A DNA stretch of 64,000 nucleotides. It comes from Anthoceros angustus. Taxonomy: Eukaryota; Plantae; Anthocerotophyta. Both the position numbers and the translations under genes were made by a program. Under the pieces are notes generated by a model. That model ran no database searches and had not been told where the DNA came from. It saw only the letters and a list, made by a program, of their open reading frames with translations. How positions within the stretch are numbered: position 1 is the first letter of the stretch; each line of letters starts with the position of its first letter. The stretch lies in NCBI GenBank assembly GCA_010909165.1, contig VJWM01000144.1:554965-618964 (forward strand), read 5' to 3'. This document shows positions 792 to 10,325 of the stretch, in pieces.

Positions 792-1531
792 TCATTTCTT
801 CCTTGGCTGACGAGGACTAGCGAACTTGGACTGAGAGCTAGCAGCCTTGAGAGACTTCTTCGTCCATCTGAACAGCCGATCGATCGGCAAGCAGCCCAGA
901 GCGCATACCATGGCAAGAGTGAAGAGGGGTAGGAGAAACACATCCTGCCTGTATGTACCCTCAGAGGTGATATACCAAAGCAGAGCAACCATGCCAGCCA
1001 GACTGACATAAGAAGGGCCGAACATGGAGAGGATGGCCCCAACCAGGCTCAAGACACTGCCAGCCAGCAGGACAGGATGTATCGACGCGGGTTCTGCTGC
1101 TGCACCTGCTCCATCCCCTTGGTACTTGGCCAGCAGGGTGTTCCAGTCTGGTAGGGTGAAATCTTGGTTGTCTCCCACGATGGACTCCACCTTGGTCATG
1201 AAAGCTGAGGGGTAGGCCATGAATTGCAGAACCGCCTTGTTCACCACGTTGGCGTGGTGCAGATAGGAAATCAGGACTTCGACTGAACTTGTGCAGGTGC
1301 CCTTGTGACATGGAACGCTGCCGACATCAGGGGAGCTGACTCAGAAGCTTGCGGCAAGCACTGATAAACGTGCCAGGATCGTGAAGGAGCAATGGCAAGC
1401 AGGGGGGTTGGTGGTTACCTGAAGATTGGAAACGAGAAGAGGGTGACCAGGAAGAAGAATTGGGCGAGACGCCCTCGCAAATCCATGTTGAACGGGTTGA
1501 CCGGCCTTGGGCCTTCCCCGTTTCCAGCCAT
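792..1531 (-). CDS. Conserved plant multi-pass membrane protein of unknown function; 2 exons (1531-1419, 1317-792), 212 aa
   Basis: Exon 1 MAGNGEGPRPVNPFNMDLRGRLAQFFFLVTLFSFPIF joins through a GT..AG intron (1418-1318, 101 nt, phase 2) to SVPCHKGTCTSSVEV...YPSAF...LPDWNTLL...VLLAGSVLSLVGA. The total 639 nt is an intact frame. It resembles a plant family with PC-x-G-x-C-T and LAGS motifs (from memory). Confidence 0.75.
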
Positions 1532-2100
1532 CGTTGTCCGCTCACCGACGGGATGGAATCTGATAAAAGACCTGGCTGGCTTCGGGAGTCGGCTGAAATA
1601 GATATAGTGTGCAGTTGTGTGGAGAGCATGCCAGGATTGGAATGAAGCAACCTGGTGGTCTCAAGGCTCTGATTAGAAGCAAGCCCGCTTCCCGCAGCCC
1701 TTCGGGCGATTGCTGGAGATGTCTTTCACTGTTGCGGGGCGCATCGGCACCGAGCACTTCTGCAGCTAATGATTGTGCATGGGGGGACGTTGGATCGGAG
1801 AAGGTAATTCTGACATTCATCAGCGCCCATGTTTGAAAGATCTGTTATGGAAGGTGTTAGGTGGCTTGGTAGGTCTTGACATGGATCGTTTCAGGGGCGC
1901 TGCAACCAGTGGGAATCTGTATGCGGAGCAAGTGCACAATCCACGGGCTTTCAGAAAAAGCTTGGAGTCACAGACACTGCGTGGGAAGGATTCTACCAAC
2001 GGAGTGAGGACTCTGGAAGGTCCAACTTGCTCTCGCTCGCATCATCTTCTTTGAATGGACTGTATTTTGTAGGCATGCTGAAGCTACGTAGCTGTGGCAG

Positions 2101-5100
2101 GCTGATGGGGACCAGAATCAGCCTTGCAGGTTGGGAAGGTGTAAGGAGGCCTTGGAGTGTGCAACTTGGAGGAAAGCGTGTGAAGAAGAGCAGCTCAATG
2201 AAGTCGTTGAAGCTTTGGACTTTCTGGTCCAGCGGGAGTGTTATGTTCCGGCGTCTGTTTTTCATACCGTCATCAAGGGGTGCACTTCAGATCAGGATGT
2301 GGTTGCTGGCAGGCATGTGCATGCTCTCACAGTTCAAAGTGGCCATGAGTCAAACACATCCTTGGCTAACAATATCATCTCCATGTATGCTGCTCATGGG
2401 AAGTTACAGTGGGCTACACAGGTGTTCAGTAGTGTGGCTGCACCAAGTCCGTCTACTTGGGCTTCCATGATTTTGGCCTTTGCCGAGCATGGGGAGCCTT
2501 TGCAAGCTATCAACATGTATCGCCAAATGCGAGAAGCTGCGGTAGAGCCAACCAGCTATATATTTGTGGCCGTCCTTAAAGCGTGTGCCAGGGCTGCAGA
2601 CTTAGCATCTGGCAAGGAGGTGCATGCTGACATTCTGGGCAGTGTGGTGCAGCTCAATACATATGTTGGGAACTGCCTGGTGGACATGTATGCAAAATGT
2701 GGGAGTGTAGCAGATGCTCGCAGAGTATTTGACAGATTGCCCACAAAAGATTTGGTGACATGGAATGCTATGATCGCAGGATATGCTCAACATGGCTTTG
2801 GTCAACAGGCCCTTGCTCTCTTTGCAACTAAGCAACAAGAGGATACCGCTCCAGCCAATTATGTGACATTTTTGTGTCTCTTGAAAGCCTGTGCAAGTTC
2901 GCGGGCTTCAAGTGAGGGAAAAAAGCTACATTCCCAGATTCAGAGACGAGGACTTGAAGATGATGTGGTGCTTGGCAGCAGCCTGGTGGATATGTATGCC
3001 AAATGTGGTTTATTACAAGATGCTCAGAGAGTATTTGACAGGTTGCCCCGAAAGAATGTGGTTACATGGACAGCCATCATCGGAGGATATGCAGAGAATG
3101 GATTTGGTCAAGAAGCTCTGAATCTTTATAGTCGGATGCAACAGGATTGTGTCAGTCCTGCCAATCATATCACCTTTGTTTGTCTCCTGAAAGCTTGCGC
3201 TAGTGTTGGAGCTTTACACGAGGTAAAACAGCTGCACTCCCAAATACAAGAAAAAGGCCTAGAAACTGACGTGGCTGTTGGGAATATATTGGTAGACACG
3301 TATGTCAAATGTGGGAACCAGAATGATGCTCGTGCAGTATTTGACAAATTGCCCGTGAAGGACAGTATGTCATGGAATGCGTTGATCTCTGGGTATGTCC
3401 ATCAGGGTTTGGGTCATGAAGCCCTTACTCTATACGCGAGGATGAAAAAAGAAGCAGGTGCTTTATCCGATTGTTCTACATTTGGCTGCCTCCTGAAAGC
3501 ATGTTCAAGTGTCAGAGCTCTTCGTCAGGGCAAGGAGCTTCATGATGCAATCAAGAGACAAGGACTGGAAACTGATGATAGTCTTGGAAACAGCCTGGTA
3601 GACATGTATGCAAAATGTGGGGGCATAGAGGATGCTCGGGGAGTCTTCGAAAGATTGCCCACCAAGGATATAACAGCATGGAATGCTCTGATTGCTGCAT
3701 ATGTTGAGAATGGTCAGAACCATGATGCAGTTGCTTTGTATCAGAGGATGCAAGTTGAGGGTATTACTGCAGCCAATCGCGCTACATTCCTGCCCTTATT
3801 GAAAGCAACTGCTAGCCTTGGAGCCCTACACCAGGGTAAACAACTTCATTTCAAGATCAAGGAAGGGGGACTGGAAGGAGACGTTGTCGTTGGCAGCTGC
3901 CTGGTGGACATGTATGCAAAATGTCACAGCTTACAGGATGCCTGCGAGTTGTTTGAGAGGTTGCCCACCAAAAATGTGGTGACATGGACTGCCCTGATTG
4001 CGGGATATGCTCGCCACGGGCTTGGCAAAGAATCCTTGAGTCTGTTTGAAAAAATGCAACTGGACGGTGCCACTCCAGCTGATAATGTTACGTTAGGGTG
4101 TGTACTGAAAGTGTGTGCAGCTGTCAGATCTTTAGATAAGGGCAGAGAAGTACACTCCCAGATTGAAGAAAGGGGGCTGGCAGGTGATGTAGTCATCAGC
4201 AACAGCCTGGTGGACATGTATGCAAAATGTGGGAGTCTAGAGGAGGCCCGCAGAGTATTTGACAGATTGCCAACCAGAGACGTGTTGGCATGGAATGCAA
4301 TCATTTCTGGATATGCTGAGCATGGTCTTGCTCAAGAAGCCCTGTCTCTTTTTGCAAGTATGCAAGGTGAGAGTACCATTCAAGCAGATCATATTACTTA
4401 CGTGTGCCTCCTGAAAGCATGTGCACGTGTCAGGGCGTTACAGGAGGGAAAAGAACTTCATGCCCAGATTCAGAAAAGAGGACTAGAAGATCATGTAATT
4501 GTTGGCAACGGTCTGATAGACATGTATGCAAAATGTGGTGATTTAGATCACGCACGTATAGTATTCGACAGATTACCAGCAAGGGATGTGGTAACATGGA
4601 CTGCCATGATTGCAGGATATGCTCAGCATGGGCTCGGTCAAGAAGCCCTCTCTGTCTATGCACGTATGCAAGAGGAGGGTCTGACACCAACAGACCATGT
4701 TGCATATGCTTGCCTCCTCAGAGCGTGTGCCAGCATCGGATCCATACATCATGGGAAACAAGTCCATGCTCAGATAGAAAAAAGAGGACTGGAGGGTGAA
4801 GTTACTATCAGAAATGGCTTGGTTGACATGTATGCGAAATGTGGGAGTTTAGAGGATGCTCGTATGGTGTTTGACCAATCGCCAGCAAGAGATGTTGTAA
4901 CATGGACGGCAATGATATCAGGTTACGCACACCAGGGGCTAGGTCAGGAAGCCCTTGTTCTGTACGAGGGTATGCAACAGGAGGGCATCGCAGCTGATCC
5001 TGTTACTTTTGTCTGCCTCCTGAAAGCTTGTGCTAGCATTGGAGCCGTAAATCAGGGAAAGAAGCTTCATTCTCAGATCCAGGGAAGGGGACTGGACTGT

Positions 5101-6099
5101 GATCTGGTTGTTGGGAATGCATTGGTCGACATGTATGCAAAATGTGGAGATCTTGCTGATGCTCGCAGTGTATTTGACAAGTTGCCTTCCCGAGATGTGG
5201 TATCATGGACTGCTCTGCTGAATGGATATTGCCAACATAGTAATGGTCAAATGGCAATTGACTGTTTTCAAGAGATGCGGCAAGATGGGGTGGAGCCCAA
5301 TGATGCCACATTCATTTGTTTGCTTGTAGCATGCAGTCACGAGGGCCTGGTAAATGAAGGTCAGCAGTTCTTTAAGATGATGGTGGAAGACTACTGTTTA
5401 GAGCCCACAGTTCACCACTATTGTTGCATGGTTGATCTTCTTGGGCGGTCCGGCCGTCTGGACGAAGCAGAGCACATGTTGCGCACTATGCCAGTTCCCA
5501 GTGACGTAGTAGGCTGGACGTCTTTGCTGAACGCCTGTAAATACCTCGGCGACATAGAGCGTGGAAGGAGATGCTTTGACCGCCTCCATGCATCGGAACC
5601 TCAAAATGGAGCTGCATACATGCTCATGGAAAGCATCTATCGAGATGCTGGTAGGTGGGAGGACGTAGAGCATCTCCAAACCTTAAGAAAGTCCGCCGGT
5701 GCTTGCAAGAAGCCTGCAAGGGCCTGGATTGAAGTAAACAGCAAGGTGCACACATTCTGTGTGGGGGAAGAAAGAGATGACATCTCCTCTAAGCTAAGAA
5801 GTGTTAACATGTGGCTGGAGGAAGAAGTGGGACATGTGCAACAGGCAGAGGCTCTTTCTAACAGAGAGAAGCAGGATGCCTTGTGTGGACATGCTGAGAA
5901 ACTAGCGTTGGCCTACGGTCTTTTGAACACTTCAGATGGCACAACTTTGCTAGTCACCAAGAATCTCCGTATGTGCAATGACTGCCACAGCGGCACCAAA
6001 GCTATGTCGAGGATAGAAAAGCGGGAGATCATAGTTCGAGATGCACACCGAGTCCACCATTTTGTGAACGGCTTTTGTTCATGCGGGGATCGGGTATGA
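2101..6099 (+). CDS. PLS-class PPR RNA-editing factor, ~30 PPR motifs plus E1/E2 plus DYW:KP deaminase domain ending in DRV; probable extra 5' exon(s) upstream (putative intron 2004-2100)
   Basis: 1322-aa ORF with ~10 P-L-S triplets (LVDMYAKCG..DA..VFD.LP..DVV.W.A.I.GY). C-terminus has KKPARAWIEV, HAEKLALAYG, KNLRMCNDCH and CSCGDRV. An in-frame stop at 2089 means the true start needs splicing. Confidence 0.95.
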   Translation, partial: ADGDQNQPCRLGRCKEALECATWRKACEEEQLNEVVEALDFLVQRECYVPASVFHTVIKGCTSDQDVVAGRHVHALTVQSGHESNTSLANNIISMYAAHGKLQWATQVFSSVAAPSPSTWASMILAFAEHGEPLQAINMYRQMREAAVEPTSYIFVAVLKACARAADLASGKEVHADILGSVVQLNTYVGNCLVDMYAKCGSVADARRVFDRLPTKDLVTWNAMIAGYAQHGFGQQALALFATKQQEDTAPANYVTFLCLLKACASSRASSEGKKLHSQIQRRGLEDDVVLGSSLVDMYAKCGLLQDAQRVFDRLPRKNVVTWTAIIGGYAENGFGQEALNLYSRMQQDCVSPANHITFVCLLKACASVGALHEVKQLHSQIQEKGLETDVAVGNILVDTYVKCGNQNDARAVFDKLPVKDSMSWNALISGYVHQGLGHEALTLYARMKKEAGALSDCSTFGCLLKACSSVRALRQGKELHDAIKRQGLETDDSLGNSLVDMYAKCGGIEDARGVFERLPTKDITAWNALIAAYVENGQNHDAVALYQRMQVEGITAANRATFLPLLKATASLGALHQGKQLHFKIKEGGLEGDVVVGSCLVDMYAKCHSLQDACELFERLPTKNVVTWTALIAGYARHGLGKESLSLFEKMQLDGATPADNVTLGCVLKVCAAVRSLDKGREVHSQIEERGLAGDVVISNSLVDMYAKCGSLEEARRVFDRLPTRDVLAWNAIISGYAEHGLAQEALSLFASMQGESTIQADHITYVCLLKACARVRALQEGKELHAQIQKRGLEDHVIVGNGLIDMYAKCGDLDHARIVFDRLPARDVVTWTAMIAGYAQHGLGQEALSVYARMQEEGLTPTDHVAYACLLRACASIGSIHHGKQVHAQIEKRGLEGEVTIRNGLVDMYAKCGSLEDARMVFDQSPARDVVTWTAMISGYAHQGLGQEALVLYEGMQQEGIAADPVTFVCLLKACASIGAVNQGKKLHSQIQGRGLDCDLVVGNALVDMYAKCGDLADARSVFDKLPSRDVVSWTALLNGYCQHSNGQMAIDCFQEMRQDGVEPNDATFICLLVACSHEGLVNEGQQFFKMMVEDYCLEPTVHHYCCMVDLLGRSGRLDEAEHMLRTMPVPSDVVGWTSLLNACKYLGDIERGRRCFDRLHASEPQNGAAYMLMESIYRDAGRWEDVEHLQTLRKSAGACKKPARAWIEVNSKVHTFCVGEERDDISSKLRSVNMWLEEEVGHVQQAEALSNREKQDALCGHAEKLALAYGLLNTSDGTTLLVTKNLRMCNDCHSGTKAMSRIEKREIIVRDAHRVHHFVNGFCSCGDRV

Positions 6100-6159
6100 C
6101 AACGCAGCCCTGCTGACACACCATATGCACATTCTTAAAACCGTGCATTTTCAGAAAAG

Positions 6160-6295
6160 GGAATGCGCTTCATAAATATTGTGACCCGCCGAACTATCCA
6201 CCATCTTGTGAACGGATCCTGTTTATGACAACGCAACCAACAACGCAGTTCTGCCGACAAACATTACGTTCTCAAGCCGTGCATTTTCCAAAGTA
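6160..6295 (+). pseudogene. Degenerate second copy of the DYW 3' end and 3' UTR
   Basis: tccaccatcttgtgaacgg...tatgacaacgca...ccgtgcattttc mirrors 6054-6155. Confidence 0.6.
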
Positions 6296-6379
6296 CATAC
6301 TCCGCTACTTCAACAGATTCCCAGTCGGTGGCAGATGCACGAACTTGAAGGGCAGCTATGAAGACGTGAGCATCTGCCT

Positions 6380-6720
6380 TCACACCTGACCTCTGCATTT
6401 CATGGTACATGGTGAGCTAAAATCAGCCCCTCCTACTCCATTTGTCCATGCGCAACAAGCGCCTCATGTCCAAACCCCTGCTGAGTACCCAGCGACCCAA
6501 GCATTCCATGTCACCACATTCTTTGTCTTCATGCCGTCAAAAACCTGGCATGCATCTTCCAGTTCACCACATTTTGCATGCGAGTCCACCAGGCAGGTGC
6601 CCACCACTACGCCGTCCAGCAGTCCTCTTTCGACAATGTGAGCGTGCAGCCGCCAGACCTACTGCAGGCACCACTGCTTGCATAGGCCTTTTGAAGGGCC
6701 ACATTCTCGATATGAGTGGC
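6380..6720 (-). pseudogene. PLS-PPR relic
   Basis: Minus strand reads VVVGTCLVDSHAKCGELEDACQVFDGMKTKNVVTWNAWVAGY, then a frameshift and a stop. Confidence 0.75.
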
Positions 6721-7329: not shown

Positions 7330-7530
7330 GCCATCCTCTTTTGACAGTCTGTGAGTGCAGTTGCCTGCCCTACTGCAAGGCACCAGTGCTTGCATAGGCC
7401 TTCGGAACGCAAGCAGAAGTAGCATGTTGAGCTAAAATCAGCCCTTCCTGCTCCATTTGTCCATACGCAACAAGCGCCTCATGTCCGAACCCCTGCTGTG
7501 TGCTCAGCGATGCAGTCATTCCATGTCATC
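7330..7530 (-). pseudogene. PLS-PPR relic related to 6380-6720
   Basis: Near-copy of 6415-6515 (gagctaaaatcagccc...caacaagcgcctcatgtcc) plus LRRPMQALVPCSRAGNCTHRLSK-type PPR fragments. Confidence 0.6.
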
Positions 7531-7673: not shown

Positions 7674-10325
7674 TCATAAGCAAGTGACACTTGCCTCCTT
7701 CGACCGCGCACTTAGCTCTCTCAGCAACTCATACAACAATGCTTCTTCTGGATGCCTGCGGTCTCCCACCAGAAACGTGTGCACATTGTTTTCCAGCTCA
7801 ATCCAACTCTGGCCAGGCTTCTTCCAGGCACCTGCCTTGCGTCTTAACTCATCTATTTCATTTGCCTGATCCAACATGCCAGCATGAGCATAGATCTGCA
7901 ACATCAGCACATAGGCTGCAGGATCTTTTGGCTTCAAAGCAACAGCACAATTGAAGGCCTGCCTTCCCAGGGCCACGTTACCATGCTTCCTGCAGGCAGC
8001 CAGTAAGCATAACCATACAGGCAAATCCGGCTGCATCGGCATTTCTGAAAGGAAAGATTGTGCCTCGTGAAATAGGCCTGCACGACCAAGAAGGTCAATT
8101 ATACAGAGGTAATGCTCCACAGTAGGACTGATACCGTAGTCCCTGCTTATGCTTTCAAAGAACTCGAGTCCTGAATCCACCAATGACCCATGGCTGCATG
8201 CGGAGAGGAGTCCAATGAATGTGAGCCTATTTGGTCTTATTCCTGCAAGGTGCATGTCCTTATAACACTGCAGGGTCATCTCACAAGCTCCAAGCTTGGC
8301 ATACCCACCAATTAGTGCATTCCATGATACTACATCGGGCTGAGGCATTGAGTCAAAGACACGTTGAGCATCCACCATGCTCCCACATTTGCTGTATGCA
8401 TGAATCAGAGAGTTTGTCACCAGAAGGCTGTCTTTGAATTGAGACTCCATGATACGTTGGTGTGTATACGAGCAAAGGTCTATTACTCCTGCATTGCTGC
8501 ATGCTTCTAGAACAGCAAGAAATGTAGCCTCATCTGGTTTCACACCTTCTGTCTGCATTTGAGAATACAGTTGCAAAGCCTTCCCAGCTTGGTGCTGCTG
8601 ACCATAGGCTGCAATCATTGAATTCCACAAGACTACATCACGGCGGGACATGCTTACAAAGACCTGTTCTGAATCCTTGATACTCCCACACTTTGCATAC
8701 ATGCTGACTAAAGCACTAGCAACAAACAAGTCCGATCCGAAACCCATCTTAGTTGCTGCAGCATGCACTTTCAGACCTTTTTTAAGTGACTCCGCCTTGA
8801 GATTTTGACCATTGATATGTGCATTTTCTTCCTTTCCGGCACAGCTAGTACATGCTTCAATAGCACTGAGGAAGGTCGCAGCATCTGGCAGGACATTATT
8901 GCCAAGCATTTGCCAAAAAATCTGCAAGCCCATGTCCCCTTCTTCTTGCTGAGCATATGCTGCAATCATAGCATTCCATGACACCACATTGCGGCATGAC
9001 AAGCCATCAAATACGTGTCGAGCATCTATTATGCGTCCACAGGTGGTATACATACTAATTAAACTGGTACCAACAAAAACATCGGATTCGAAACCCCTAC
9101 CAGCAGCTTCAGCATGGATTTTCTTCACCAGTTGCAGTGACTCCAATTTAACATTGCCACCTTCCACAAGTGACCTGTCCTCACGTACTGCAAGACTCCC
9201 ACAGGCTTGGATAGTGCTGACAAACGTCCAGGCATCTGGTAGGATGGCCTCTTGTTGTATGTTCCAAAACATCTGCAAGCCAATTTGTCCTTGACCCTGC
9301 TGAGCATATGCTGTAATCAGGGCGTTCCTTGAGACGACATCACGGTGGGACAATCGATCAAATACGTGCTGTGCATCCATGATGCTCCCACACTTGGCAT
9401 ACATGCTGACCAAGGTGTTACCAACAAAGACATCTGATTCAAATCCCCTCTGAGCTGCATCATAGTGTATTGCCTTACCCGTCTGCAATGTCTGTACTTT
9501 AACTTCATGCGCCTCCAAGAATTTTCTTTCCCTCTCCGCCAGGCTGCCACATGCCTGGAAAGCGCTAACAAAAGTCCTGGCATCTGGCTTCACCCCTGAC
9601 GTGCACATTTTCTGGTAAATCTGCAACCCCTTCTCCCCTTGGCCATTCTGGGCGTAGGCTGCTAGCATGGCATTCCATGACACCGCATTGCGGTAGGACA
9701 TCCCGTCAAACACGTGTTGAGCATCCTCTAGGCTGCCACACTTTGCATACATACTGATCAACGTGCTGCCAACAAACACGTCTGATTCCAAACCGTGGGT
9801 AACAGTGGCAGCGTGAATCCGTTTGCCCTCTTCCAAATCCTCCAACCTGCTGCATGATTTCAGTAAGCTGACAAACGTGTGTTTATTGGGCTTCACTCCC
9901 TCCTGCAGCATCCGCTCATAGCAGGCGAGTGCCTCTCGACATTTTCCAGCATTGCTATACCCTGAAATGATGGCAGTCCACGAGAAGACGGACCGGTGCA
10001 GCAACCTTCGGAACAGATAAAGGCCATCAGAAAGGCTTCCGCAGTTGACTAGTGTGGTGACTACAAAGTCGCCCAGACTTCTATCCGACTCCAACCCATT
10101 CTTTGCCAGATGACTGTGTACCCATTTCGCTTCGGCGAGGGCCCTGTTCTTCATGCACACCTGCAACACGTTTCTGTAAAACTGCACCGAAGGCACTTTC
10201 CCCTGCTGTTCCATGTTGCGCAGGACAAGGAGTGCTTGCTGAAGGTGTCCATCCTTGCACAAGCTGCTACGTTTACCACTGTCCACAGCATTCATCGAAG
10301 GGCACAGGTCCGAACCTCCCATCAC
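7674..10325 (-). CDS. PLS-class PPR editing specificity factor, E+ type (PG box, no catalytic DYW); start codon uncertain
   Basis: 883-aa ORF of PLS repeats and E1/E2, ending KKPGQSWIELENNVHTFLVGDRRHP...EASVTCL* with no HxE/CxxC. Three L motifs carry ~15-aa insertions. Confidence 0.93.
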   Translation of the reverse strand: MMGGSDLCPSMNAVDSGKRSSLCKDGHLQQALLVLRNMEQQGKVPSVQFYRNVLQVCMKNRALAEAKWVHSHLAKNGLESDRSLGDFVVTTLVNCGSLSDGLYLFRRLLHRSVFSWTAIISGYSNAGKCREALACYERMLQEGVKPNKHTFVSLLKSCSRLEDLEEGKRIHAATVTHGLESDVFVGSTLISMYAKCGSLEDAQHVFDGMSYRNAVSWNAMLAAYAQNGQGEKGLQIYQKMCTSGVKPDARTFVSAFQACGSLAERERKFLEAHEVKVQTLQTGKAIHYDAAQRGFESDVFVGNTLVSMYAKCGSIMDAQHVFDRLSHRDVVSRNALITAYAQQGQGQIGLQMFWNIQQEAILPDAWTFVSTIQACGSLAVREDRSLVEGGNVKLESLQLVKKIHAEAAGRGFESDVFVGTSLISMYTTCGRIIDARHVFDGLSCRNVVSWNAMIAAYAQQEEGDMGLQIFWQMLGNNVLPDAATFLSAIEACTSCAGKEENAHINGQNLKAESLKKGLKVHAAATKMGFGSDLFVASALVSMYAKCGSIKDSEQVFVSMSRRDVVLWNSMIAAYGQQHQAGKALQLYSQMQTEGVKPDEATFLAVLEACSNAGVIDLCSYTHQRIMESQFKDSLLVTNSLIHAYSKCGSMVDAQRVFDSMPQPDVVSWNALIGGYAKLGACEMTLQCYKDMHLAGIRPNRLTFIGLLSACSHGSLVDSGLEFFESISRDYGISPTVEHYLCIIDLLGRAGLFHEAQSFLSEMPMQPDLPVWLCLLAACRKHGNVALGRQAFNCAVALKPKDPAAYVLMLQIYAHAGMLDQANEIDELRRKAGAWKKPGQSWIELENNVHTFLVGDRRHPEEALLYELLRELSARSKEASVTCL

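Follow-up and report, generated by a model that had tools for sequence, protein, structure and literature searches.

The stretch of DNA analysed here (the window) comprises 64,000 nucleotides (nt) of the hornwort Anthoceros angustus (GenBank assembly GCA_010909165.1, contig VJWM01000144.1, positions 554,965 to 618,964 of the forward strand). On its plus strand, from 1642 to 6099, lies a three-exon gene for a pentatricopeptide repeat (PPR) protein of 1418 amino acids (aa), which ends in a deaminase domain of the DYW:KP type. The gene is intact, transcribed and spliced. It is probably a functional nuclear gene whose product would be an organelle-targeted PPR-DYW:KP editing factor acting on one organelle site, most likely by U-to-C conversion. 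An initial annotation had proposed a U-to-C editor at this locus, with an atypical C-terminus and a shortened gating region that might define a variant enzyme.

Exon structure, transcription and conservation of the gene

Contigs from public sequencing runs were aligned to positions 1300-6700 of the window, the joined 1418-aa protein was obtained by script translation, and database searches were performed with each exon separately. The frame 2131-6099 (plus strand) consists of 1322 open codons and was found to open just after a TAG at 2089-2091, with no ATG near 2101-2131; its first in-frame ATG is codon 85, and a start at this codon would remove the first repeats. When exons 1642-1803, 1895-2019 and 2130-6099 were joined, a single frame was obtained from ATG 1642 to the TGA, in which ATG 1642 is the first in-frame ATG past an upstream stop. 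The gene start was assigned to 1642 because of the aligned run contigs together with the splice sites. Thus, the open frame that the initial annotation had placed from about 2101 was retained as the body of the gene, and the start was moved upstream across two introns.

Both introns are bordered by canonical GT..AG on the plus strand. Exon 1 (1642..1803) provides the start codon and 54 codons for a Ser/Ala/Arg-rich N-terminus (8 R+K, 4 D+E and 17 S/T/A), which may serve as an organelle-targeting peptide, judging from its composition. Intron 1 (1804..1894; 91 nt, GTAATT...TTCAG) is followed by exon 2 (1895..2019; 125 nt), which is open in frame when joined to exons 1 and 3 and is covered at about 1889-2018 by contigs of runs X3 and X16. 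Intron 2 (2020..2129; 110 nt, GTCCAA...CCTTGCAG) leads to exon 3 (2130..6099), which holds the open frame 2131-6099 and the remaining coding sequence to the TGA. Record 25 of X3, which belongs to a sister species, passes from 1419-1801 to about 1889-2018 and on to 2128-2693, omitting both introns. Record 10 of X16 begins at 2099 within intron 2 and continues to 2693, and therefore unspliced copies exist too. No family was detected by Pfam searches of exon 1 and exon 2, each taken separately. A PDF domain of the OSB type at the N-terminus was likewise not indicated, by a Pfam match in either exon or by a PDF tripeptide, which is a weak negative since Pfam may lack a model for it.

Two other gene models were rejected. 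A 64-nt intron at 2130-2193, fed from ATG 2076, would delete residues that have aligned counterparts in the N-terminal motif of the neighbouring PPR protein, and it is contradicted also by the run contigs that back the other splice pattern. A frameshift joining an overlapping 147-aa frame was ruled out by sister-species contigs, which contain no indels over 2099-2693.

Run X1, from the same organism as the window, yielded contigs with 0 differences over 2185-2693, 2755-3618, 4206-5910 and 5886-6444 at low depth; none was found over the intron/exon-2 stretch 1843-2023, and the 5′ end is thinly covered in this run. X1 is regarded as behaving like RNA because its perfect-match contigs break at splice sites elsewhere in the window. 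The contig 5886-6444 gives the 3′ untranslated region (UTR) a minimum extent of 6100..6444.

In two sister species, the gene was recovered from run contigs at about 94-97% nucleotide identity, with zero indels over more than 3 kb of coding sequence. Word searches of the protein collection with the last 90 and the first 187 residues of exon 3 returned no orthologue protein above 85% identity. The absence of a full orthologue from this collection is probably due to breaks of short-read assemblies at conserved PPR words, since these assemblies break the PPR gene at 2567-2747 and 3834-4014. At the same two places, the k-mer depth reached 10^4-10^5 in all four runs, compared with about 10-30 in the flanks; they hold the most conserved PPR words (near VVTWNAMI and DMYAKCG), which are common to hundreds of paralogues.

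The PPR array and the DYW:KP domain

Searches of the frame against Pfam gave PPR families at an E-value of 7e-150, E_motif at 1.2e-11 and DYW_deaminase at 1.6e-32 (frame residues 1240-1320). By motif parsing, the PPR region was resolved into a PLS-class array of 33 motifs (2155..5505), arranged as a degenerate P motif, L1-S1, nine P1-L1-S1 triplets (35/36-35-31 residues) and P2-L2-S2, followed by the E1 and E2 motifs (5506..5706). The initial annotation was correct about the great length of the array; its estimate of about 30 repeats is replaced by 33 PPR motifs plus E1 and E2. The protein, at 1418 aa, is longer than all 43 retrieved relatives (740-1223 aa, within an allowed range of 727-2313 aa). 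The triplets are 38-64% identical to one another in protein and 53-71% in DNA, and no tandem array was found in the PPR region by Tandem Repeats Finder. A recent internal duplication as the source of the long array was ruled out on these two grounds, and the length of the array is therefore old.

The expectation of a long, readable target code was borne out, as canonical pairs of 5th and last residues (ND, NN, NS, TD, TN or SN) are present in 19 of the 22 P and S motifs. The P/S code, with S2 set at -4, predicts the target 5′-CNNUYNAANUUNUYNAGNUUNUGNUGNUANN-3′ for -34 to -4, a pattern of about 36 bits, to which natural sites match imperfectly.

The deaminase domain (130 residues, 5707..6096) was identified by Pfam, by matches to the Protein Data Bank (PDB), by an AlphaFold (AF2) model and by tree placement. 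It begins with KKPARAWIEV (5707..5736), the KP version of the PG box; the replacement of Pro-Gly by Lys-Pro in this N-terminal box is the defining feature of the KP subclass (PMC11845758). The HAE motif (5890..5898), with KP-typical Ala, supplies the zinc-ligand His and the catalytic Glu (H62 and E64, both invariant in 46 domains). The residue next to this His is Ala or Cys in KP domains and Ser in PG domains. Lys85 (5959..5961; Lys88 of KP6 and K915 of OTP86) occupies an invariant column 21 residues past the catalytic Glu, with the same spacing as E894 and K915 of OTP86 (PMC7611903). CNDC (5974..5985), 25 residues after HAE, supplies the CxxC zinc ligands C90 and C93, and the second zinc site HHF...CSC with the terminal DRV (6052..6096) contains H117, C124 and C126; all five of these residues are invariant in the same 46 domains. 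DRV and the TGA stop lie at 6088-6099. Accordingly, the KP box, the HAE, the intact CNDC and the DRV end that had been noted in the initial annotation were all found again in the translation. The protein retains all 15 columns that are invariant among the 46 aligned DYW domains. Those of both zinc sites and of K85 are among them; K85 is non-discriminating because PG domains carry the active-site Lys too.

The closest sequences in the PDB were 9kfx (2e-33) and OTP86 (7o4e, 7e-32). The AF2 model of the domain reached a predicted local distance difference test (pLDDT) score of 85.8 and a predicted template modelling score (pTM) of 0.79, and its best Foldseek match was the RNA-bound consensus PPR-DYW protein 9kfx (TMq 0.88), with OTP86 at 0.79. 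The fold is thus the same as that of the DYW:PG proteins OTP86 (7o4e/7o4f) and 9kfx, with which the domain shares about 40-45% identity, both zinc sites, the catalytic Glu and the active-site Lys. In contrast to DYW:PG proteins, which have a PG box, HSE and a terminal DYW or DFW, it carries KP, HAE and DRV, and it is about 4 residues shorter at each of two places, behind VGEE and within the beta-finger of the gating region. The gap after VGEE is not peculiar to this gene because most KP relatives share it. The beta-finger was located at 5827..5889 from the beta-finger 870-891 of OTP86, which lies directly before H892-S-E894 (PMC7611903).

For the closest relatives, the 18 best matches to frame residues 1130-1322 among assembly proteins were examined. 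They are 55-68% identical over this region. In nearly all of them, the KP box reads KKPAxA or nearly so and is accompanied by HAE, with HVE in one protein; GRP is the terminus of several. A tree of 47 DYW domains was calculated with IQ-TREE from a sample that is biased in that it consists of the protein's own best matches. In this tree, the domain fell within the KP group (support 87/87) and the PG group was separate (88/82), in agreement with the DYW:KP identity originally assigned. It stood outside the GRP subclade (100/97; the type of KP2 and KP3), whose terminus it also lacks, and outside the fern DMF/DLF clade (96/98; the type of KP6). Its branch is short (0.15) and lies in an unresolved set with VDH-, DSP-, DNH-, DDT-ended and similar proteins. 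The order PLS-E1-E2-DYW, the Lys-Pro box, HxE(x)nCxxC with Ala, the active-site Lys, the grouping with KP domains and the non-DYW tail all identify it as a DYW:KP protein.

DRH and GRP are the two hornwort KP variants (PMC9478123). With the DRH-type group (Gerke et al. 2020 and Gutmann et al. 2020, as presented in PMC9478123), which was the template for KP1, the protein shares the PLS-E1-E2-DYW architecture, the KKPAxA box, LCGHAE, LLVTKNLRMCxDCH, VVRDAHRVHHF, CSC, the Asp-Arg that opens the final triplet and the gap of about 4 residues after VGEE relative to PG domains, and it clusters with such proteins. Its KP box, HAE, LLVTKNLRMC and VRDAHRVHHF stretches agree with hornwort-type KP relatives in general. 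It differs from the DRH-type group in having Val rather than His as last residue, a finger 4 residues shorter with a domain of 130 rather than 132-133 residues, a Trp directly after KKPAxA, at a seventh KP-box position that is filled by Cys, Gly or Val in many relatives, and a very long array in a protein of 1418 aa.

Editing direction and the significance of the tail and finger

Hundreds of such KP genes are present in hornwort genomes, and we know of no characterised native enzyme for U-to-C conversion, the one pyrimidine transition of which this can be said. Hornworts, some lycophytes and ferns are the clades with this editing. Judged from its sequence, the gene described here is a legitimate candidate U-to-C editor. 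In the proposed mechanism, the 33-motif PLS array would read about 30 nt upstream of one plastid or mitochondrial site, and the E1 and E2 motifs with the DYW:KP domain would place the position-0 base beside the catalytic zinc (His62, Glu64, Cys90, Cys93) and Lys85. U-to-C conversion through a lysine-linked intermediate would then be the most likely reaction, by analogy with the designer proteins KP2, KP3 and KP6. This direction is favoured by the confinement of KP domains to clades with U-to-C editing and by the match of KP domains to U-to-C sites by code (PMC9478123, PMC11845758). HAE and Lys88, the equivalents of which the protein shares with these designers along with HAE...CxxC, are required for U-to-C editing in KP2, KP3 and KP6 (PMC11845758).

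Several points weigh against this reading. Only synthetic consensus KP proteins were assayed in the two studies (PMC9478123, PMC11845758), and no native DYW:KP protein was shown to edit; the designers are consensus-based and carry short synthetic PLS arrays. Three of the seven designer KP proteins were active, namely KP2 and KP3 of the GRP type and KP6 of the fern type, and KP1, which was derived from hornwort DRH-type sequences, the subgroup nearest to the tail of our protein, was not among them (PMC9478123). KP6 edits C-to-U too in human cells (PMC9478123), and single substitutions in it, including F133H, shift the direction (PMC11845758); therefore, the KP label does not fix the reaction. 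On the side of the gene itself, the kind of each run (RNA or DNA) was a guess of the tool, the 11 classifiable sister-species differences (6 non-synonymous and 5 synonymous) are too few for showing purifying selection, the target is a prediction from the code, and the beta-finger is the only part of the domain model with low confidence (residues 41-60, pLDDT 55-56).

Several of these points would suit an editing factor whose KP-type domain nevertheless deaminates C to U, or works in both directions. Besides the dual activity of KP6 and the lack of U-to-C activity in the designed DRH-type protein (PMC9478123), Lys88 is kept in PG domains and small changes flip the direction (PMC11845758), and two states that favour C-to-U in KP6 are present in our protein, namely Gly before HAE and Val at the L113 equivalent. 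Two further mapped states, Ala at the D116 equivalent and Val at the I119 equivalent, favour U-to-C in KP6. All four states are non-discriminating and context-dependent because they are common to all hornwort-type KP relatives, among them the GRP group that served as the basis for KP2 and KP3, two designers with U-to-C activity only. Given also that KP domains occur only in clades with U-to-C editing, a C-to-U or bidirectional factor was considered unlikely, though it is the alternative that survives best.

The shortened finger and the tail could instead be early damage, either in a factor that provides specificity while its DYW domain is inactive or regulatory, or in a gene drifting to loss. 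Removal of the beta-finger from OTP86 markedly lowers editing (PMC7611903), mutation of D or W in the DYW triplet abolishes the activity of PG proteins (PMC9478123), and a decayed duplication of the 3′ end is present at the locus, adjoining PPR debris. Against this, the frame is open over 1418 codons with all invariant catalytic and zinc residues and canonical code residues, the gene is transcribed and spliced, and no indels interrupt its frame in two sister species. PG proteins are little affected by alanine changes in the gating region (PMC13324415), and fingers just as short occur in several other intact relatives. Loss or inactivity of the domain is accordingly improbable, and an active KP editing factor, with U-to-C as its likeliest reaction, is preferred.

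The shortening noted originally after GHV was confirmed and lies in the beta-finger: 14 residues separate GHV from LCGHAE, compared with 18 in the closest relative, P0001, and in most other KP relatives. Similar or greater shortening was found in P0016, P0017, P0021 and P0046. The tails of 25 KP relatives include DRH, GRP, DRP, DAH, DSP, DNH, DHH, DKL, DDL, DDT, VDH, DYV and others, more than 10 forms of the C-terminal triplet in all, and this triplet has been described as showing 'greater diversity in KP proteins' (PMC11845758). DRV itself was found in none of the retrieved relatives; it retains the Asp and Arg of DRH and differs from it in the last residue alone. The suggestion that DRV and the deletion define a variant enzyme is therefore weak, as KP relatives vary in the tail, four of them are short-fingered as well and the literature calls KP tails diverse. 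Both features are read as ordinary within-family variation in an ordinary DYW:KP member. By analogy with KP6, in which F133H at the last residue pushes editing towards C-to-U (PMC11845758), it is possible that the terminal Val affects editing direction.

A functionally distinct KP subtype marked by the DRV tail and short finger is very improbable, since the protein forms no separate supported clade, sits on its short branch in a mixed-tail group and has neighbours that vary freely in tail and finger length, even though its ending is unmatched among retrieved relatives, the last residue can influence direction in KP6 and the Val codon GTA lies more than one step from the His codons.

Synthetic KP editors come to a halt crosslinked to RNA, a behaviour for which the consensus design or the absence of native context is suspected (PMC11332814). 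There is a slight chance that the protein is a natural KP enzyme of a distinct kind, set apart by the combination of its Val tail, its finger shorter by 4 residues and the Trp of its KP box. Such an enzyme might release its product where designer KP proteins stay crosslinked, or differ in its balance of U-to-C and C-to-U editing. With a 33-motif code of exceptional length and clarity, it would also rank among the native reverse editors that are simplest to match to one site. Nothing found in this analysis singles out the 2131-6099 gene mechanistically, and it is a further member of a described family. The practical gains are a corrected three-exon gene model and a motif-by-motif code; since it is native, intact and expressed and its code is long and unambiguous, this KP gene can serve as a test case for biochemical work and for assigning a target.

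A decayed tandem copy of about 140 nt was observed just downstream of the stop codon, where 6153-6290 (plus strand) repeats 6010-6152, that is, the last approximately 90 coding nt and the first approximately 50 downstream nt. In frame, the copy reads like ...IVTRRTIHHLVNGSCL and the gene itself reads ...IIVRDAHRVHHFVNGFCSCGDRV, each followed by a stop. The copy sits within the transcribed 3′ UTR. The age of the DRV ending is not shown by it because the alignment around the stop codon is ambiguous.

Neighbouring features of the window

A gene on the minus strand lies head-to-head with the PPR gene, and its first exon, from 1419 to at least 1814, is antisense to PPR exon 1 and the 5′ region. All RNA-like runs break at 1419, which corresponds to a minus-strand donor (CTTCAG|GTAACC, 1418/1419), whereas the DNA run X2 crosses this position unbroken. 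The depth of the minus-strand exon in the RNA-like runs is about 10 times that of the PPR body, and the higher depth at the 5′ region of the PPR gene is attributable to the overlap with this antisense first exon.

A second PLS-class PPR gene is located at 7674-10325 on the minus strand, convergent with the first. Its frame of 883 aa contains E and E+ motifs and a PG-type box (KKPGQSWIE), and stops shortly past this box without a deaminase core; from this layout, it would be either an E+-type protein or a truncated DYW:PG gene. The interval that separates the two PPR genes contains short PPR-like open fragments at 6264-6607 and 7370-7519 (minus strand), for example ...CLVDSHAKCGELEDACQVFDGMKTKNVVTWNA..., which look like the remains of a dead PPR gene. 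The conserved PPR words in these fragments account for the very high k-mer depth that all runs show at 6368-6700.

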